In this document: positions 2,511 through 18,100 of the stretch, in pieces | Layout of the letters: each line of letters begins with the position of its first letter | Numbering within the stretch: position 1 is the first letter of the stretch | DNA from: Gracilinanus agilis | Lineage: Eukaryota | DNA: 64,000 nt | Reading direction: 5' to 3' | Assembly (NCBI RefSeq): GCF_016433145.1 | Contig: NC_058130.1 | Location: 90,590,655 to 90,654,654 of the forward strand | The notes under the pieces: model-generated | The model's database searches: none | Told to the model about the DNA's origin: nothing | What the model saw: the letters and a program-made list of their open reading frames with translations, nothing else | Position numbers and translations under genes: made by a program

Positions 2511-4697
2511 AGAAACAAATGACCAAAAAAATCAAGCTGCTTGTCATTTCTTCCGGCACAGTAGCATTCCGTCATAATCATATGCCACAACTTGTTTAAC
2601 TGTTCCCCAACGGATGGGCACAGCATTTTTAAGGAATCCCTTTTTGGTGCATGGATTAGCATGACCAAAGAATTCATTGCCTTGTGGCCACTCTGCAAAT
2701 GAGGAGGATTTCTGTCCTTGGGATCAGCCTGGACCCCAGAGAGCAGATGCAGTCCTTGCTGTTGTTGTGTTGGTTCAGGCTTGTGATTTCTTTAGTGGAG
2801 GAAATTCCCAGGAATGTCTACAATTGCTCTGCAAGGGATGATCTCACAGTCATCTGGGATTCGGAGGGGTTAAGTAACCATCCGCAGGCCCAGAGTCCCT
2901 TTGTCTCCAAGGCAGAACTCGAGCCTTTTTAGCCACTGTGGCTCTCACTTGGCTGACTTTAGAATCGTCCTTCAAGGTTTATAAAGTCTCTTTTCCTAAT
3001 AGCAATACTAGAAGCAGCACACAGTATGGTACCCATTTTACAGACTCAAGCACTTATATAGTGCCTATCCCAGAATAATAGGATTGTAGGTTTAGAAGGC
3101 ATCATCTAGTCCAAGGGCAGCAAGGTAGCTCAGTGCATAGAGAGCCAGGCCTGGAGATGGGAAGTCCTGGGTTCAAAATCTGGCCTTAGACACTGCCTAG
3201 CTGTGTGACCCTGGGCAAGTCATTTATCCCCTGTAGCCTAGCCTAGGAGCCAATACTTAGTATTGATTCTAAGACAGATAAAAAATTATTTAGTCCAATC
3301 TTCTTTCTTCTTTTACACATAAGGAAAACTGAAGCCCATAAATGGAAAGGGATTTGCCTACAATCACTCAGAAAGTGAATTATAGAGACAATTTGAACAC
3401 AGATCTCTTTTCTTGACTAAACCCAATGTACTTCCCACCACACAATAATTATGCATTATAATATTCAGTGATCTATAGACTAGACCTTTCTTGGGGATGG
3501 AGTGTTACAGAGATAATAATGATAATATTTATGTAGCATTTTAAGGTTTGCAAAACAATTTACAAATATTACCTCACTTAATCCTTGCAGCAACCCTAGA
3601 AGGCTGATGCCATTACACTTAAGGAAACTTCAGCCAACAGAGATGAAAGTCACTTGTTAAGGGACACATAGCTAGTGATTATCTGAAGCTGGATTTGAAC
3701 TCAGGTCTTCCAGACTTCAAGTCTAGCATTTAATTCATTTTCATCTTTTTCTTATTTTGAAAGTCTATAATCCATTTGATTTTGGGTGCTCTTACAACAA
3801 TGGCCAATATGGAAGTGTGTTTTACAAATAATACATGTATGGCCTAGATCAAATTGCTTACTCTCTCTGAGCAGAAGGAAGGAAGTGAGGGAGGGAGACG
3901 GTTTAGATCTTGTAATTTTGGAACATATATGTTAGAAGGGGGCAGGTGAGTGGCTCAGTGGATGGAGAACCAGACCCAGAGATGGGAGGTCCTGCGTTCA
4001 AATCTGGCCCTCAGACATTTCCCAGCTGTGTGACCCTGGGCAAGTCACTTCATTCCCATTGCCTAGCCCTTGCCATCCTTCTGCCTTGGGACCAACATAC
4101 AGTATTGATTTCAAGATGAAAAGTAAGGGTTTAAAAAAAAAAGAAAGAAAATGTAAGTTAAAAATTACTATTCTATGTAATTGCGAAAATAAAATATTTT
4201 TGAACAAAAAAGAAAGTCTCTACTCCAGCCTTTGTTTCCTTTTTTATGTTCCAGGTGGTAACTCTTGGATCCTCCTACAACATCCATCTGATCCTTTACC
4301 CTGAATGAAAATCCCATGTTTCCCAGGAAGCCTCTCCTGACCCCTCTTAATTCCAGTACTTTCCCTTTTAAAATTATAATTTTTATATATGAGTATATAA
4401 ATAAACATGTAAACATATTTATTTATATATTATCTATCTTACATATATACATAAGAACATATATATATACATATATATATATATATAACAAAAATTTGAA
4501 TTCCTCTTTATCCTCCATATAGAACTTGCTTTGTAGTTATTTGTTTGCCTTCCTCACTAGACTAAGTTCCTTGAGGGCAGGGACTGTTTTTTGCTTCTTT
4601 TTGTATCCCCAGTTCTTAGTATTGTATCTGCCCAGGGGAAGCCCTTCATCAGTGTTTATTGAATTGAAGACTACAAAGGGAAGGGTAAGACAAAGGC

Positions 4698-8649: not shown

Positions 8650-9985
8650 CTGCCTTTCAGCTCAGGGCTTCAATCTCTTTAATTTTAGAGGCTCCATTTT
8701 CTTCACCTGGGTATTTTTATGATCCCCATTTAACTAGTCACTCCTATGTCTGCCTCTTTGGAGTGGAACTTGGAACAGGTTATATAGCTTTGGAAAAGCT
8801 AATGTGTACTATCCAGCAGGCTCTTTTCCTGGATCCTTATGATCCCATGGAGCCAATGTTCTTAGGGGTTCTAGAAGGACAAGACTAAATGGAGCCTTCA
8901 TCGGTTACCAAGAAGTAGCTAAAGTCAATGACTATTAAGGTTTTAGAGTTATAAACTCCCTGAAGGGGCCACTCCTTAAACTACTTTTGAAAAACAGTTA
9001 TTTGCCCTTGTTTCTACTGAACTGGTGATGCAGGGTCATACCATTACCCTTCATTAAATTTCCCTTTAGGAGCTGAGCAATGTAAGATGGTCCCTCTAAC
9101 AAGATGGGGAGCCCTCCTTTGTTAAATAGAAATGGGACATTCAAGATCAGGCTTCCATAGACCCCTTAGATGTTAGTTGCTCTTCATGAACAGATTGCGA
9201 CTTTGCCAGAGGCTGACCCCTCCACCCATTCTAGCCCTAGCACTTTGCTTATTCTATTAGCCCCACTGATTCCTACCTATAAGGACTTAGCTCTTGGGGA
9301 ATGATATTTTTCTTGATTTCCTGATGGCTCTCACAATTCTGAGAGGCATACACCACTGGACACCAATGGCCATTAACCCAATAATAGGAGACACTCGGAG
9401 GTACTAGGATCCTGGCAAGTCTTCCCAGCGAGCCAACCTCTGAGCTATATGGCTACTGAATGAGAGCCAGGAGGGATGGGGGCAGGCAATATTTTTTTCA
9501 TACTGATTCCTAGGTAGTAACTATAAGCTAAGCTGAGTGATCTGGAGTCTGGAGAAAACAGAACAGGACAATTAAAAACTCCCCGCTTTTGAGTCAGAAC
9601 CAATGATGGACTTCTGCTGATGCTTTCAGCTACAGAGTTGTTTGAAAGGCATGCTAGTACCCATCAGAGATATCATATATATTCTTCATTCTGCTGGACT
9701 GAATAATCTGGTTGATGAATTCAAGAAAATAGCAGAGATTGGAGACTGGGTCTATTATCAATATGAACATAAAAGGTCATAAAGCTACATCAATTAGCAT
9801 AGAACCATATGATTCCTAAAGATAATATGTGGCTATTTCTGCTCCTCTTGGCAAATGAAACATCTGCTTTTGAAAGCTTGCTATGGCATGATTCCATATG
9901 GCTCTTGACCTGGCCCTGATTGGTAAACTGATTATATTAGCTCTCTTCCCCCATCTTAAGTCTCGGTTTACTTTAACAGCTTTTG
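8650..9985 (+). mobile_element. Degenerate class III (ERV-L-like) retroviral pol fragment: RT connection, RNase H, integrase start
   Basis: Colinear broken-frame motifs HFLHLGIFMIPI*LVTPMSASLEWNLEQ (8695), QQALFLDPYDPMEPM, TFEKQLFA (8983), K*KWDIQDQA (9124), GKSSQRANL*AIW (9414), HTDS* (9499) and W*TDYISSLP (9921). Confidence 0.85.
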
Positions 9986-11438
9986 TTATTGTTCAATCCT
10001 TTTAGCTATGTCTGATTTTTCATGACCCTATTTGGGATTTTCTTGGCAAAGATACTGACTTGCCATTTCCTTCTCTAGCTCAGTTTACAAATGAAGAAAC
10101 TAAAGCAAACAGGGTTAAGTGACTTGCCCAGGGTGGTCACACAGACCACTTTTGAAGACCAAGCCCATATATTTCAAGTGTATAAGATAGTTCTAAATCA
10201 GCAAATAAAGATTTTTCAATTCAGGACAAAGCAATTTTGCACTTTGTCAAAGGGTTAACCTTATGGGGAGGAGATCTCAACCTCTGGGAAACAGCCACTG
10301 TGATTAGTCAGAATTTTCATTTCTTGTTCCTCAATTTAACCAATATTTATGGGGTCACAGGTCACACGAGGAAGTAGAACACTTCAGAAAGAATCCTGGG
10401 TTTTGGAACCAGAAAATTTGGAGTCAAGTCAGCCAGCCAAGCAGTCAATAAACACTTTTTAAGCATTTACTATGTGCCAAGCACTATGCTAAGTACTAAG
10501 CTCAGCTCTATCATTTACTAGTTGTGACCCTGGGCAAATCATGGAGAGGGCAGCACTGAACATAAAAGATCCAGGGTAATAAAATCAAGTTTCAAGTAAA
10601 GAAGGTGGATGGGCCAGTAGAGAAGGTAAATTCCCAACTACATCGTCTTGGTCTTTCACAACTTTTGCCTACCCCCAAAACCAATGTCAGTCTCCTAGAC
10701 TATAGGAATAGGTGCTTCTAGAAAAATCTTATTCTCCAGTCAGAGAAGAACAAACCAGAGCCAAGTATTAGAACTGGATCATGACAAGTAATTGCCTCTT
10801 GGATGGGAAGCCAACATTAGCTGGGGTTTGGGGGCAAAGAAGTAGGAGTGGGTCTTCAGCCACCAAGCCACTGATGGATCTTTGGATCTTAGCGTCATCT
10901 TGACTTCTTGTTGAGGGCCCAGGCTAATGAATCCTTGAGTGACCTTAGCACCTTAGAATCAATCTCTGGAGCGGACTTAGGAAAAATGGATTCCACTGTG
11001 GCTGGAGGCAAGAATGGCATTGTTCTGCAAAGAGTATGAAACTAGATAGGAGTCAAGAAATCTTCTTCTGAACTCTACTCCTAGTTGTGTACATTTTGAA
11101 AAGTCTCTTCCTGTCTCTGATTTTTTTCCACCTTTGTAAAATGAAGAGTTGAATGAAATGATCTCTAAAGGCTCTTCTAGCTCTGAAAATACTTGAAATC
11201 TATGATTGATGCTAGAGTGATCAGCTAACCAATCAATAAACATTTACTAAGTGCTAAAGAGGAAGGAAAGAGTTTTTTAAAAAAGTGTCCCTAGGCTCTG
11301 TCACATAAATACTCTGGTAGTCACATGAATACTCTGGTAGGAGAGAAAAAGTTTGGATTTCCAACAGGTCCCATTCCCTAGGTTATCTGGTCTCTAGTAG
11401 CTGTTCTCCTCACCCACCTTAAGGCTATGATGTAGAGC

Positions 11439-11452
11439 GTTGCCAGGGTAAC
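11439..11452 (+). promoter_or_regulatory. RFX X-box (GTTGCCAGGGTAAC), putative germ-cell promoter element
   Basis: Matches GTNRCC-N(0-3)-RGYAAC and lies 43 nt upstream of the Kozak ATG at 11495. Confidence 0.6.
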
Positions 11453-11494
11453 CTTGAATAGAGGGGCAATGAAGAGATAGAACCTGCAGGAGCC

Positions 11495-12752
11495 ATGGAA
11501 TCTATCAAGAAAGCAAGGGGGTTCCACATTACCAGGAACCAAGTCCTGTTCCCTGAATCCCCAGTCATCTGAAGAGTAGCTCATGGTGTCCAGCTGAGAT
11601 GGCCACAGCCCCAGGTGCCAGTCTTTGTAAGTTGTAAGTCCCAAACTAGAGTCCGTCCTGAGAGTCAAAGCCCATTCTCCTGTCCTCTGGCAGCAGTCTA
11701 AGAGTAGCTACTGAAACCAGATTATGGGGCAATGACTCCAACTGGGCCTAAACTCAATGGGTGCAAGATGGGAGGTAAAGCTACCCCAGGCAGCACTGAA
11801 ATACCCTAGTTACCAACCTGGGGTCAATGGGAAGGATGGACCTATGAGCACAAGGGTCTTTGTGGTGTAAGCAGGGAAGTTGGGATCAATTTTATACCTG
11901 GATACCCATCCCAATGGTAGCATTCAAGAGGCCTCCACAATGAGATCCCCAAGGGTTATGTCTAGTCTTATGAAATTGCTACCACCACTATGCCCATTCT
12001 GGTCAAGGGTAAAACCTACCAGGATCACACCCAGCAGCAATACATGTGGGTAGTTGCTCCCAAGAACCTCCCTATGAAGGATAAGGAAATTAAGGAATTA
12101 GCCAGAGTCCTTACTGGTCAGAGTATAGTCAACTCTGGCTAAAAGAAATAGTCCACTGCTGTTGGAGATAATAGACAAGTCAACTTTGCCATACACGTTC
12201 ATGGAACACCCAATTTAAGGTCAGGCTAGGAACCTGATGCTAATTAGTGCCAGTCCTACCATAAGCCAAGACTACTTCTACTGGTTTAGGACAAATAAAA
12301 TAACAAGGCAGTACCTGGAGAGGCAGGCTTATGTTGTCCTTAGATGTTGCCCATGATACCTACACCAACGTCATTGGTATCCATGGTAATGCCTATGACA
12401 GCTGCTCCAGGGGTGTCCATGACATTGCCCATGATAATGTCCAAGGTAGGATGTTCACCCCTAAAGAGCCTCCAACCACATTGGGGAGAGAGTTTATATA
12501 CTCTCATCCCAACTACAACTTTCTTTCCAGTGGAGCCAAAACCATCAAGAAGTCCAACATCAAAAATCCAAGCTCCACTTACTCCCAAAATCTGAACCCA
12601 AAAGTCATTTTTGCCATCACCCCCACCAAGGCTGGGCAGGACGACAAAGACATAGACATTTGCATGGTATCTACTAATGAAGAATTTATTCAGGGCTCCA
12701 ACTCTGAGAACCAGGCCATCTGCATTAAAGACAAAAAAGTCTCCATTACCCC
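11495..12752 (+). pseudogene. Probable decayed 5' part of the ancestral ACTL11 reading frame
   Basis: Kozak gccATGG at 11495, repeat-free sequence with coding-like composition, and broken open runs (11736-12050 with one TAA in the main-ORF frame; 11966-12139; 12304-12858; 12344-12595). Stops occur in all three frames. Confidence 0.45.
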
Positions 12753-15086
12753 ATGGCCACATGCAGCATGGATGGCCAGGAGCTCTGCTCTAATCAACCC
12801 AGTCAATTTCAGGCTTCCTATACCCTGGGCTCCTACCAGCCAAACAAGAAGGGCATGATATTAGGCATATGCACTAGTCAAGCCAAATTTGGGGTTGTTT
12901 GTGAGGGAACTAACTTCCATGGGGAGGCTCACTGCAAGGAGACCCACAGGAGCCTTCCTCTAGAGGCACAGCCCTTCTACATCATGGACAAAGTGGTCTG
13001 TCCTCAATCTCCAGCTACCCTGACCACTAACTCCCAGAAGGTTGAATGTCCTAGCAAAGACCAATCTTGGGCTACCAGAACAAGTCCCTCCCAAACATCT
13101 AAGATCAGAGACAGGGAAATCTTAAAGTCAATCACAAGAAACAACAATGCAGACCTGGAAGAGAGGGGCAAGTCTAAAAACCCTGTGTCCACAAAAATTG
13201 GACTGCTTAGTGGTGCTATACCCCTGGAGCCAATCTGCTTTGTTGGGCAAAATATTCTAACCAAACAGAAGGAAATCCACTGGCCCCAGGCAGCACCAGA
13301 CAAGGGTAATCCTACATCTTCCTGGGCCATATTATCATCAGACATCTCCAAGAGTTTATCAACTAAGGATCCCAGCTACGGTACCACATATGATAGCCAA
13401 TGCCAGGAATCATTCTCCTACAGTTCAAATAAAGAGGAAGGGAACATGGTCTCTTTCAGTGAGATCAGTACATCAGAGAGTATTTCTAATATAGCTGAAG
13501 TCTCCAGAAAAATCAATACTGAGACTGTCCTAACTGATCCCCAACTTATCAAGGAATTAACTGCACCTATGATGATCAACGTAGGTGATATCCAATCTTC
13601 AATGGAAAATAAAAACTCATCTGTGCCTCTACCCACTCATGTAGGTGTATCAAAGGTGCCCCTTTCATCAGGAATCTCTTTCTATACTGGAAAGCATGGG
13701 ACATCTCAGGTCATGGCAAGCCAGAATACTAACACTAAGCCGACTCAGAATGTGGCCGGCAATGTCAGCTATGGAAAATCCACCACTAAGACTCTGCCAT
13801 TTAACACCTACTGCCGACCTGGTGTCACTTACAAGATATTGCCCATGACTGAGGTGGAAAAGGGGCCTCATTGTGTAAAATATTCCCTCACAGAGTCAAG
13901 TGAAAACCACTCAATGGGCAAACACTTTGGGGCTTTCCAAGGATCCCATCATGAGCTAGTCTCCACCGCTGATTTCCAAGAGCGCCCCCCTGCCCAAATG
14001 ACCTCAAGCCACACAACAGCCTCCTTCAAAAACTTGGCTGCTGTGGTGATAGACACAGGAACAGGCTACAGCAAGTGTGGTTTGGCGGGGGAGGATCGGA
14101 CTCGGGCTGTAGTGCCTACCCGGGTGGGGAGACACCTGAACTCTGAAGGGGACAAAACCCCCTACTATATCACAGAGGATGCAGAGGCAGCTTGCTCTAC
14201 ACTGATCCGTGGGGTGGTCACTGACTGGGATGCCCTAGAAGTCCTCTGGAATCACATCTTCTATAGCAAATTGTGTGTGGAGCCTGAAGAATTAGCTGTA
14301 CTGGTGGCTGATTCACCGGTCTCCCCTCGTACCAATCGTGAGAAGGTAGTTGAGCTCTTGTTTGAAAATTTTGGGGTACCTGCCATGCAAACTGTCCATC
14401 AGGCATTACTCACCCTCTATGCCTATGGGCGCACCACAGGACTGGTCATGGGCAGTGGGCATGGCACTTCCTATGTGGCTCCCATTATTACAGGTGAACT
14501 GGCACCGCTGAACCTTTACCGACTAGACGTGGCTGGGAAAGACCTCTCTGAATACCTCTCCCAGCTACTTTTGGCTGGTGGGCAGCCACCACCTAAGATC
14601 GATGTTCTGACCCATATGAAGGAGACCTGCTGTTATGTGACCCTCGACATGGTCTCTGAACTCTGCCAACCAGAGAGCAAGAACCGGCTTGACTTTGTCC
14701 TTCCAGACAAGCATGTCCTCTCCCTTGGGGCTGAACGGTTCCGCTGCCCTGAGGCCTTGTTTAAGCCTGATGTCCTGGGCCTGGATCAGCCCAGTCTACC
14801 TGGACTGGCCCAGATTAGCATTAGCCAACTGGAGCCACACTTGCAAGAACAACTGTTGGCTAATGTGGTTCTGGAAGGTGGGACCACTCTGCTCAATGGT
14901 TTCTCTGAAAGGGTCCAGCAAGAACTAGGGTCCACAGCAAACGTCTTATCCTTGCCTCATCGTGCCATGGCTGCCTGGCTAGGAGGTTCCATCATGGCCT
15001 CCCTTGATTCCTTCCAGACTCTCTGGTTGAGCAGAGGGGAATACCAGGAAGAGGGCTCGTGGGCCATCTATAAGTATCACCTTTGA
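12753..15086 (+). CDS. ACTL11: Intronless actin-like protein (ACTL11 orthologue), 777 aa: ~428-aa Ser/Thr-rich N-terminal extension plus actin fold (~14037-15083)
   Basis: Uninterrupted 2334-nt ORF. Actin motifs VVIDTGTG, NREKVVELLFENFGVPA, GAERFRCPEALF, VVLEGGTT and AAWLGGSIMASL. The single exon and position just upstream of CAMKV match mouse Actl11 / human ACTL11P (recalled synteny). Start codon uncertain: 12753 or the stronger-Kozak ATG at 12768. Confidence 0.85.
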   Translation: MATCSMDGQELCSNQPSQFQASYTLGSYQPNKKGMILGICTSQAKFGVVCEGTNFHGEAHCKETHRSLPLEAQPFYIMDKVVCPQSPATLTTNSQKVECPSKDQSWATRTSPSQTSKIRDREILKSITRNNNADLEERGKSKNPVSTKIGLLSGAIPLEPICFVGQNILTKQKEIHWPQAAPDKGNPTSSWAILSSDISKSLSTKDPSYGTTYDSQCQESFSYSSNKEEGNMVSFSEISTSESISNIAEVSRKINTETVLTDPQLIKELTAPMMINVGDIQSSMENKNSSVPLPTHVGVSKVPLSSGISFYTGKHGTSQVMASQNTNTKPTQNVAGNVSYGKSTTKTLPFNTYCRPGVTYKILPMTEVEKGPHCVKYSLTESSENHSMGKHFGAFQGSHHELVSTADFQERPPAQMTSSHTTASFKNLAAVVIDTGTGYSKCGLAGEDRTRAVVPTRVGRHLNSEGDKTPYYITEDAEAACSTLIRGVVTDWDALEVLWNHIFYSKLCVEPEELAVLVADSPVSPRTNREKVVELLFENFGVPAMQTVHQALLTLYAYGRTTGLVMGSGHGTSYVAPIITGELAPLNLYRLDVAGKDLSEYLSQLLLAGGQPPPKIDVLTHMKETCCYVTLDMVSELCQPESKNRLDFVLPDKHVLSLGAERFRCPEALFKPDVLGLDQPSLPGLAQISISQLEPHLQEQLLANVVLEGGTTLLNGFSERVQQELGSTANVLSLPHRAMAAWLGGSIMASLDSFQTLWLSRGEYQEEGSWAIYKYHL

Positions 15087-15098
15087 TAGTCATGGGAG

Positions 15099-15104
15099 CA
15101 TAAA
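15099..15104 (+). terminator. Possible variant poly(A) signal CATAAA of the actin-like gene
   Basis: 12 nt after the stop and followed by GT/T-rich sequence; no AATAAA nearby. Confidence 0.35.
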
Positions 15105-18100
15105 GTTACTCTGGGAGTCAAAGAGGACTCTGGGTCTCTGGGTTTCTCTTGGGGTCAAAGGATTCCAGGGTGGGGGGACAGGGCTTCAAGACACATAATG
15201 GCATGACTTTGCTACCAAGTGCTCCGACCATACCGGACAGAGGATCTTCTCTTCTTTTCCCTAACTTGCTTGTGATATACTTTCCCCAACTCTATTCCAT
15301 CCTCTCCATCTGGACTCATCCTCCAATCCCTACCAGATGTGAGAGGAAAGATAGGGTCTTACCATCAAACCTGGTATCTTCAGTCCTTTGGGAAAGTATG
15401 ATTCCCCCCCACACCCAACACATTCCTAGCAGACTGGGTTTCCTCTACAGCTCCTGATTTGGGGTCACAAAGGGGCTGGTGCCTTGCAAGAAATGCAAAT
15501 CTGTCTTCTTCCCCCTAAAGAACAACCGACCGGGACCTTTAGGGCCCAAGGAGCTGCTTCTTCTCTGGGATTTGCCCCCGTTGCCCAGGCGACCAGCACA
15601 ATTACCCTTGATTGCCAGCTTGTTGCTATGGAGATTTCAAACACAAAGTAATAACCCACACAGCATGCCAAATGACTCATAGCTGGGGGGTGGGGACAGA
15701 GGGAGAGGATCCTTCCTTTCTGATGGCATGCAGGATTGTGGGGGAGGTCCCCAAGCTTTTCACCCCTCCAGATCTAGAGAACATGGCTACATTCTCAAAA
15801 CACCAAAGAGCTCCAACCCAGAATCTAGCCAGTCAGCCAAGGGACCATGACCCAGCTTCCTTCCTGCAAGAACTTCTGCCATAGCTCTATTCAGAACCAT
15901 ACAAGACTTCATTGGCCCGGAGGCAGTAAATCATGAAGAATTCATGTTGAGGGATAAGTAGGGATAAGGGGGAGCCATGGGAGGAAGAGTGGGTGAGTGT
16001 GGCTCCTCCCAGGTCAGCACACTTTAGGGATATTTAATCAATGTGTGGAAGGGGCAAATGAAAAAGCAAAGGTGGTAAATAAATACCAAAGGACAGAACC
16101 AGAAAATGTGGGTAAATAACAATAAAATGGGGACAAATATCAGGGAATTGGAGTGGAATGTATTAAAGCAGATTAATCGTGTCAAGTATGAGCAATGGGA
16201 TCAAATTATGAGAAAAAAGGTGCGAATACCAAAAAGTTGGATAAAAATGCCCCAAACCAAAGTAACTGGCAAATGTTAGAGTGGGAGCAAATAGCAGGGA
16301 ATAGGGGTAAATACTAAGACATGAAGAGTAAATAAGGGTAAATTGAGTAACACAGAATTGAGTAAATATAGGGGGTGGAACATAAAGGAAGCAAGAAATT
16401 GGGGCAGAGTAGGAGAAAATACCAGGGAATTAAGAGTAAAATACCAGAGGAAGACCTAGGTTCAAATCCTGCCTCCTTTACTTAAATATTTGTGTGACCC
16501 TCGTAAAGTCATTTAACTTTTGTACTTCTATTGGCCCATCTGTAATACTGGATTCGGTGGCCTCCCCAGTCTCTTCCAGCTTTGAATCTAAGAACCTAGA
16601 AATGGGGCAGTAAACAACATTGAATGAAAGAGTAAATGGCAAATATCAAAGACTGAGTGACAAGAGCAGGAGCAAAGGCTTTTCTCTTAAGTTCTCTTAT
16701 GTTTCCAAAACACCAGGCCCAGACAGTGGGAGATTTTAAAGGTTCTTTTGTGAGTGTGTACTTAGGACCAGCCATAAGTTCAAACATAGGGTCATGCTTG
16801 CAACTCTTTCCTAAGACTAGGCACAGACCATCCTCACAGAGAGGACTGCTCCTCTCCCTGTCAGATCTCCCTGCCCTCCATTTTGAAGGACCCCTGGGAA
16901 AAGGACATCTACCTCCTCTTACTACTTGCAGGAGGACAGAGGGGAAATCTCTTTTCTAAGAGACAAGCAGAGATTGAGCTGATTATGCAAATCCCAGCAA
17001 AGAGCTGGGATAACGCATCTGTAAACCTGGGCAAGTTTTGAAAATGGTGCCCCCCACTCTGTACATTATTGCCCTTCCCCCAATCTGCCACCATCAGAAG
17101 CTTTGAACTTGCATGATTAACATACAACTCTACCTAGCACAAAATAAATATGTGCCCTGAAGAGAGGAAGGTTCGGGCATTAAACATATATGCTTTTATT
17201 AAATAACACTTTTAAAAATTTTCCTTGCCATATACATATTCTCTTCTGTGCTGTGCTCTGAATGTCTGCCCACCTTACTTATACACCTAGAAGCCAGGCC
17301 CCTGGAAGTTCAGACCTAACTCATTGCCTAACTCCAGGCAAATCCATTTCTCTCCCTTTGGGGATCAGTTTCCCCATGTGTAAAATGTAGAAGTTAAACT
17401 ATATAAATTTTTAATTTTTTTCTATAGCTAATATTATTTGAAATCAAGAGGCAGCTAGGTGGCCCAGTAGATAAAGTGTCAGGCCCGGTCAGGAAAAACC
17501 CAAGTTCAAATCCAGCCTCAAACACTTCCCAGCTATGTAACCCTAGGCAAGTCACATAACCCGTTTGCCTCAGTTTCCTCACCATCCTGGAGAAGGAAAA
17601 GGCAAACCACTCCAGTATCTTGCCAAGAAATCCCTAAAAGGGGTCATGAAGCACTGAGCAACAACATGAAATCAAGAAGCCCATTCATGTTATTCCCCTC
17701 CATGTACTCTTCAATCTATCCATACTGACTAGCTTCACCATTTCTCACACAAGATTCTCCAACTCCCATCTCTGAGCTTTTGAACATGGTCATCCCCCAT
17801 GGTAGAATTCTGTCTCTCCTCATCTTTCCCCTCTTAAAAGCAATAGCTTCCTTCAAAACTCAACTAAAACATTACCTTTTTTTAAACCCTTACCTGCTAT
17901 CTTAGAATCAATACTGTGTATTGGTTCCAAGGCAGAAGAGTGGTAAAGGCTGGGCAATGGGGGGATGTGACTTGCCCAGGGTCACACAGCTGGGAAATGC
18001 CTGAGGCTAGATTTGAAACTAGGACTTCTGGCTCTCTAGGCCTGGCTCTCAATCCACCGAGCCACTCAGCTGCCCCAAAACATTATGTTCTGCAGGAGGA

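Follow-up and report, generated by a model that had tools for sequence, protein, structure and literature searches.

A short form of ACTL11 common to marsupials, with a candidate relic start codon upstream of the gene in Gracilinanus agilis

The actin-like gene ACTL11 was analysed in a stretch of 64,000 nucleotides (nt) from the marsupial Gracilinanus agilis (contig NC_058130.1, positions 90,590,655 to 90,654,654 of the forward strand), which is called the window hereafter and to which the coordinates refer. We found that the gene encodes a protein of 777 amino acids (aa), about 355 residues shorter at its N-terminus than eutherian ACTL11, and that this short form appears to be the normal form of ACTL11 throughout marsupials. 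An initial annotation of the window had described the gene as truncated in this lineage, with a missing part of about 400 aa. The shortness relative to eutherian ACTL11 held, but the alignment gave about 355 aa, and the change could not be placed in the Gracilinanus lineage. The gene and the two parts of its product are as follows.

12753-15086, plus strand: ACTL11 coding sequence in a single exon, 777 aa plus the stop codon, with no internal stop
12753-14033, plus strand: aa 1-427, the non-actin N-terminal region, with eutherian residues about 356 to about 880 as its homologous counterpart
14034-15083, plus strand: actin-fold domain, aa 428-777, matching PF00022

The initial annotation had called 12753-15086 fully open and had assigned it to ACTL11, and both statements were borne out. 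All 777 codons are free of stops. The C-terminal actin fold is complete: Pfam Actin (PF00022) matched aa 428-774 with an E-value of 4.4e-86 over profile positions 4-407 of 410, and the match to beta-actin chains had an E-value of 4e-84 across residues 4-371 (phmmer). In a protein word search, marsupial LOC models ranked first, followed by about 75 eutherian proteins of roughly 1,150-1,295 aa, several of which carry the names ACTL11 or Actin-like 11. Homology to named ACTL11 proteins extends to the non-actin region. With the profile of this region, an exhaustive HMMER search of 1.84 billion representatives returned only 24 proteins, all of them ACTL11-like, and among these the marsupial representative had an E-value of 2e-111. 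Identity to eutherian ACTL11 was 54-57% in the actin fold, where the best local alignment covered 62-65% of the query, and 22-25% in the shared non-actin region. The coding exon is single, with a continuous open reading frame (ORF) here, in Antechinus, in Sarcophilus, in horse and in a rodent. By these comparisons, 12753-15086 on the plus strand is assigned to the didelphid (marsupial) orthologue of ACTL11, which shares with eutherian ACTL11 an orthologous single-exon gene and a C-terminal actin fold. ACTB and ACTG1 share the full-length actin fold; the window protein differs from them in its divergence and in the additional N-terminal region of 427 aa. ACTL7A, ACTL7B and ACTL9 are intronless genes with sperm or testis expression, whose products combine the actin fold with a short N-terminal extension of tens of residues. 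They are separate paralogues, and their extensions are far shorter than that of ACTL11. In some databases, ACTL11 proteins wrongly carry the label 7A, 7B or 10. Among the matches of the non-actin profile, several short Logan/ENA fragments look primate-like.

Seven other marsupial models from four orders were found.

Monodelphis LOC100028132: 778 aa, 92% identity to the window protein
Macrotis: 777 aa, 69% identity to the window protein
Antechinus (named 'actin-like protein 7A'): 776 aa, 69% identity to the window protein
Sarcophilus (named 'actin-like protein 7A'): 776 aa, found by cluster look-up
Trichosurus isoform X1: 777 aa, found by cluster look-up
Notamacropus isoform X1: 773 aa, found by cluster look-up
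Vombatus: 559 aa, with an internal gap and the same start Met as the others

All of them start at the Met equivalent to 12753, with the sequence MATC(S/K)(M/I).., and six of the seven fall within 773-778 aa, Vombatus being the exception. They share with the window protein the start Met, the architecture and essentially the length, and there is no difference in kind. An in-frame stop lies 24 nt 5' of this Met here and one is immediately adjacent in Antechinus, and the upstream frames are closed in the dasyurids as well. No close relative was thus seen to keep a longer ORF. Since the start Met is common to all marsupial models found, the short form is a property of the clade and not a change in the Gracilinanus lineage. 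Other marsupials starting near 12753 were what the initial annotation itself had named as evidence against its lineage-specific reading. Judged from these models, the 777-aa form is the normal marsupial form of ACTL11. This is a clade-level difference in gene structure, and it is already implicit in public annotations. The own annotation of G. agilis holds a model of 457 aa that is 100% identical to residues 321-777 (13713-15086). It starts at the internal Met321 and therefore misses 320 residues that the other marsupial models include.

The ratio of nonsynonymous to synonymous substitution rates (dN/dS) was calculated by the Nei-Gojobori method for the window against Antechinus and Sarcophilus. 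The actin domain had a dN/dS of 0.05, with 91% aa identity to Antechinus. Comparatively, the N-terminal 427 aa gave 0.53-0.60 against the dasyurids, with 52% aa identity. Between Antechinus and Sarcophilus, dN/dS was 0.00 in the actin domain and 0.34 in the N-terminal region. The values indicate that the shorter protein is maintained by purifying selection, as the initial annotation had supposed, with a fast-evolving N-terminal region and a strongly conserved actin fold. Human ACTL11P is a unitary pseudogene. The marsupial gene showed neither a disrupted ORF nor relaxed constraint, given its 777 stop-free codons and the low dN/dS of its actin domain, and the ORF is also intact in the six full-length marsupial models.

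Eutherian ACTL11 is about 1,200-1,290 aa long and is represented, for example, by proteins of 1,233 aa in horse and 1,209 aa in Mus caroli and by I3LJA4 in pig; mouse Actl11 is also a single exon of roughly 1,200 aa. The marsupial Met1 aligned to about horse residue 356, with marsupial MATCSMDGQELCSNQPSQ opposite eutherian ..KSQRSSQEICSSQPNQ.. in the alignment. Eutherian residues 1-355, which include MEVTKKVGGPDP..., KAPAKVLVGWGKG and RKSRWLPYFLSGEDG, have no counterpart in any marsupial model. The marsupial protein thus does not have the eutherian architecture, in which an N-terminus of about 880 aa begins with MEVTKKVGGPDP; this long N-terminus defines the eutherian form and not orthology. 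It also lacks the eutherian motifs KVLVGWGKG and RKSRWLPYFLSGE and the stretch from Ser85 to Ser263 that holds the boar phosphosites. Even the shared non-actin region is shorter in the marsupial protein (427 aa compared with about 525 aa). The eutherian extension is a real protein, because it lies in one uninterrupted ACTL11 exon in horse and in a rodent, its dN/dS between the two over residues 1-355 is 0.53, and boar sperm phosphoproteomics reported ACTL11 phosphosites at Ser85, 93, 152, 171 and 263 (PMC8322956). Its motifs KAPAKVLVGWGKG and RKSRWLPYFLSGE are strongly conserved across eutherian orders.

ACTL11 may be regarded as an actin-like protein of sperm or testis, with sperm protein evidence from pig only. 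Marsupials seem to be a natural deletion experiment, in which the actin fold and the proximal non-actin region are under selection in the absence of the first 355 or so residues. Because marsupials keep a selected protein without residues that eutherians conserve and phosphorylate in sperm, this suggests that the extension is either dispensable for the core function or does something in the sperm head or tail that is specific to eutherians. The gene is almost unstudied, and our literature search found no paper on its evolution. The biological reach is modest, as befits a little-studied sperm gene.

Two elements upstream of the gene bear on the origin of the short form.

11439-11452: perfect palindromic X-box (RFX-type) GTTGCCAGGGTAAC, a candidate core promoter element 42 nt 5' of the ATG at 11495
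11495-11572, plus strand: candidate ancestral ACTL11 initiation codon (GCCATGG), now opening an upstream open reading frame (uORF) of 25 codons, MESIKKARG...

The initial annotation had noted the ATG at 11495 in its Kozak context and its distance of 3,592 nt to the end of the stop, and both were confirmed. As 3,592 is not a multiple of 3, the ATG (frame 2) and the ACTL11 ORF (frame 0) lie in different frames. The ATG opens only 25 codons, MESIKKARGFHITRNQVLFPESPVI, with the stop at 11570, whereas the eutherian ATG opens the full protein. The strict X-box pattern GTNRCCNNRGYAAC, built on the X-box consensus, occurred at 2 sites in the 64 kilobases (kb) of the window compared with 0.14 expected. 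In horse and rodent, a similar motif lies 38 nt 5' of the ACTL11 ATG (GTTGCCATGGCAAT in horse and GTCACCATGGCAAT in rodent, both at positions 3949-3962 and with one mismatch each). The marsupial and eutherian genes thus share an X-box-type motif about 40 nt 5' of an ATG that opens ME..KK, the N-termini reading MESIKKARG here and MEVTKKVGG in eutherians. The ATG and MESMKKA are kept in Antechinus and Sarcophilus; the uORF, of 25 codons in the window, is 18 codons long in Sarcophilus and has about 100 in Antechinus.

A promoter/start profile was built for nhmmer from horse and rodent (-120 to +120) and searched against the window and the loci of the two dasyurids, together 185 kb when the two strands are counted. 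Its best match was at 11422-11520 on the plus strand of the window, from the X-box through the ATG, with an E-value of 0.02. Two collinear matches at the same site were second best in blastn-short searches. In published work, spermiogenesis genes have RFX2 sites in the immediate vicinity of their transcription starts (PMC4498915). We regard homology of 11439-11520 to the promoter and initiation codon of eutherian ACTL11 as quite probable. The initial proposal that ATG 11495 was the original start is therefore plausible, given its retention in dasyurids, an X-box spacing similar to that of horse and rodent, and the nhmmer match. If true, the kept promoter and start codon would be a concrete example of an initiation-site shift that left a relic uORF.

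The region between this ATG and the gene was compared at the DNA level with the two dasyurids Antechinus and Sarcophilus, and it falls into three parts.

11483-11680, plus strand: conserved block 1, a promoter-proximal region or first non-coding exon, holding the candidate relic start codon
11681-12329, plus strand: poorly conserved spacer, about 650 nt here compared with about 245 nt in dasyurids; a candidate intron, or else sequence that has decayed
12330-12752, plus strand: conserved block 2, beginning 423 nt 5' of the start codon, non-coding in the ACTL11 frame, with 12 stops

The description of 11495-12752 in the initial annotation was largely accurate. Stops occur in all frames (15, 23 and 19, or 57 in total over 1,258 nt), 13 of them within the first 283 codons of the 11495 frame, and the open runs it had listed are present (11736-12053 with one TAA, 12344-12595 and 12304-12858). 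The region is also repeat-free in the sole comparison made, with the rest of the window. Its coding-like character was marginal, with 57 stops compared with 65.6 ± 5.0 in dinucleotide shuffles (P = 0.049). The longest upstream open run was 149 codons, compared with 86.6 ± 21 in the shuffles (P = 0.015). Block 1 aligned to the Antechinus locus (L001 5173-5323) with 77% identity over 158 nt, 11483-11640, by blastn, and the similarity could be followed by eye to about 11680. The frame of ATG 11495 in block 1 had a pN/pS (ratio of the proportions of nonsynonymous and synonymous differences) of 1.54, without coding-type constraint. The spacer gave no blastn alignment to Antechinus at E < 1e-3 and has no copies elsewhere in the window; it contains 34 stops over three frames. 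The p-distance to Antechinus was 0.242 for block 1, 0.194 for block 2, 0.293 for the N-terminal coding region, 0.168 for the actin domain and about 0.32 for the 3' flank. Block 2 is thus better conserved than the N-terminal coding region, and its indels relative to Antechinus (2, 1, 5, 1, 6, 1, 1 and 3 nt) break any frame. These comparisons indicate constraint on both blocks, though of a kind other than that of a reading frame for ACTL11. No RNA family was found by Rfam in 10501-17500, and Pfam gave nothing credible on six upstream ORFs from both strands.

Two explanations for the upstream structure were tried and rejected. A 65-nt tandem duplication around the start codon, as a cause of the frameshift, gave local alignments no better than shuffles (P = 0.41 and 0.66). 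No X-box at one mismatch or fewer was found in 12300-12760 or in the dasyurid equivalents, as block 2 would have if it were an internal promoter with X-boxes. Within block 2, 12343-12451 contains ten ATGs in about 110 nt, in repeated CCATGA/CCATGG units that do not match the X-box pattern. TTGCCCATGATA occurs there twice, 78 nt apart, and the units are kept in dasyurids.

The route by which ribosomes would reach Met 12753 involves four further features.

11627-11639, plus strand: two overlapping GTAAGT candidate donors (11627 and 11634), with GTAGTT and GTAGGT at this place in the dasyurids
12512-12530, plus strand: candidate acceptor, a polypyrimidine tract with TTTCCAG; TTTTTCTCTAG at the aligned place in dasyurids
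11599-11637, plus strand: second upstream ATG (GAGATGG), 12 codons if unspliced, in the +1 frame if spliced from 11634 to 12531
12304-12858, plus strand: 184 codons open in the +1 frame across the start of ACTL11, with a weak coding signature in 12501-12752

An unspliced leader from the X-box promoter would contain 32 upstream ATGs, so that one would expect either an intron at about 11634-12530 or transcription that starts further downstream. The initial annotation had suggested an intron from GTAAGT at 11627 to the TTTCCAG ending at 12530. Both sites exist, with the second GTAAGT at 11634, and the acceptor is kept in dasyurids, but all that such an intron could do is make the 5' leader shorter. 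Donors 11627 and 11634 were paired with acceptors 12342 and 12530, and in none of these four combinations did an upstream ORF read into the actin frame, which has stops at 12675 and 12726. An intron ending at 12530 is plausible as a leader-shortening device. ATG 11599 is kept in Antechinus and destroyed in Sarcophilus.

In 12501-12752, 21 of the 46 mismatches to Antechinus were synonymous in the +1 frame, compared with 12.8 ± 2.8 expected (P = 0.0036, uncorrected). Similarly, 18 synonymous mismatches to Sarcophilus were found compared with 11.4 expected (P = 0.015). The pN/pS of this frame was 0.31, compared with 0.9-1.3 in the other two frames. The P value of the synonymous excess becomes about 0.02 once about six tests are corrected for, and as a coding signal the excess is suggestive only.

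As to the direction of change, we lean moderately towards a loss of the N-terminus in the marsupial stem rather than a gain in eutherians. The therian ancestor would have had a long single-exon ORF. In the marsupial stem, at a time before crown marsupials radiated, the reading frame of its first third would have been lost, and translation would then have moved to the internal Met equivalent to eutherian residue 356 or so. The X-box promoter and the ancestral ATG 11495 would have been kept, the ATG now opening the 25-codon uORF, and Met 12753 would be reached through a spliced leader or a downstream transcription start. We favour stem loss because the start codon and promoter are shared and because 355 in-frame codons are improbable from a leader; we infer that making them would need about 17 stops to be removed.

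Several results weigh against stem loss. Homology of 11573-12752 to the eutherian N-terminus, which the reading in the initial annotation implied but which it said must be shown by alignment, found no support from tblastn, profile hidden Markov model (HMM) or nhmmer searches. With more than 60 eutherian ACTL11 proteins, tblastn against 9000-15200 gave nothing significant 5' of 12753, and the upstream matches, all with E > 0.06, were spread over frames and strands. All six-frame fragments from the window and the two dasyurid loci were also searched with a profile HMM of the first 400 eutherian residues, whose matches stayed at noise level and did not cluster upstream. With block 2, the only nhmmer matches had E-values of 2.5 and 17 and fell on a collinear 'KEPPT' spot. 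In addition, block 2 is conserved beyond what neutral decay predicts, the dasyurid copy of the X-box is degenerate, and the promoter/start match is short, has an E-value of only 0.02 and was not seen with dasyurid sequences. In the exhaustive HMMER search, only therians yielded the ACTL11-specific region, and as no outgroup was found, the direction of change is inferred. The horse locus likewise had no blastn match in the upstream regions of the window and Antechinus. As even the shared non-actin region is so little conserved, the missing N-terminal alignment is weak evidence. The intervening 1.2 kb may be a decayed 5' third, as the initial annotation called it.

A eutherian gain is unlikely in our judgement, though it is the most serious alternative to stem loss. 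The therian ancestor would then have made the short protein from a long-leader transcript with a small uORF (MExxKK...). The leader would have begun just after the X-box, and the uORF would have fused in frame with the main ORF in the eutherian stem, giving rise to the 355-aa extension. The likeness of the marsupial leader to the eutherian N-terminus is confined to the first 9 codons or so, and the leader blocks show the non-coding conservation that a functional leader of long standing would have. A gain also agrees with the failure to find an outgroup with the extension and with the fast evolution of the latter. However, a leader of about 1,065 nt is improbable as the source of one open in-frame run, and the motifs KAPAKVLVGWGKG and RKSRWLPYFLSGE of the extension are those strongly conserved across eutherian orders. 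After about 160 million years, moreover, failure of alignment is expected under loss too, considering the identity of the shared region. Quite apart from the direction, part of the upstream region might still be translated in didelphids, or have been until recently, in the +1 frame. This is improbable, and it would fit either loss or gain. It could take the form of a two-exon overlapping upstream ORF, from ATG 11599 through a splice of 11634 to 12531 and 120 codons long, ending at 12858, or of a separate product of the 12304-12858 frame; the product could either be left over from the old N-terminal frame or regulate the translation of ACTL11. The 184 open codons (P = 0.015 against shuffles), the synonymous excess confined to that frame and to 12501-12752 but present against both dasyurids, the acceptor kept in dasyurids, and the fact that the splice joins ATG 11599 to exactly the +1 frame speak for it. 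On the other hand, two 1-nt indels and a TAA break the frame in both dasyurids, Sarcophilus has lost ATG 11599, the mismatches show no significant three-base periodicity (P = 0.13-0.19), and the excess shrinks with correction as stated. The peptide had no Pfam family, and a word search found no protein homologue among 5.8 billion clusters. If true, nothing but the +1 frame would survive of the ancestral N-terminal frame, now out of register, and it would be a translational gate for a spermatid messenger RNA. It is very improbable that the short protein is an artefact of stops from assembly errors or of further upstream coding exons. Nothing positive was found for this, although the own annotation from Met321 shows that models at the locus are unsettled. 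The 57 stops and the many frame-breaking indels cannot be sequencing slips, and two independent dasyurid assemblies are also non-coding upstream. The in-frame stop 24 nt before the Met is followed by no usable acceptor, the four splice pairings extend nothing, and all seven marsupial models share the start Met.

Some neighbouring elements were also observed. Between 475 and 600 nt 3' of the ACTL11 stop codon, at 15560-15690 (plus strand), is an element of about 130 nt that shares 83% identity with horse (L002 7963-8091, E = 2e-32) and 80% with rodent (L005 7926-8064), and that has a counterpart in Antechinus at about L001 8745-8825. It is more conserved than most of ACTL11 and contains two X-box-like motifs, GTTGCCCAGGCGAC (a strict match, 15580-15593) and GTTGCTATGGAGAT. 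The element probably belongs to a neighbouring gene, as a promoter or enhancer bound by RFX, or else acts as a 3' regulatory module. The 3' flank at 15093-17453 aligned to Antechinus over 2.4 kb with 68% identity, and AATAAA/ATTAAA signals are located at 16078, 16121, 16162, 17143, 17179 and 17198. Isoform X2 of possum and of wallaby has a different C-terminus, so alternative 3' exons may lie in 15093-17453. Two further blocks 5' of the ACTL11 promoter are conserved with Antechinus, 10151-10408 (75%) and 10876-11255 (72%). A perfect palindromic X-box is located about 2.6-2.8 kb 5' of eutherian ACTL11 in both horse (L002 1171-1184) and rodent (L005 1444-1457), which suggests another RFX-regulated promoter nearby.

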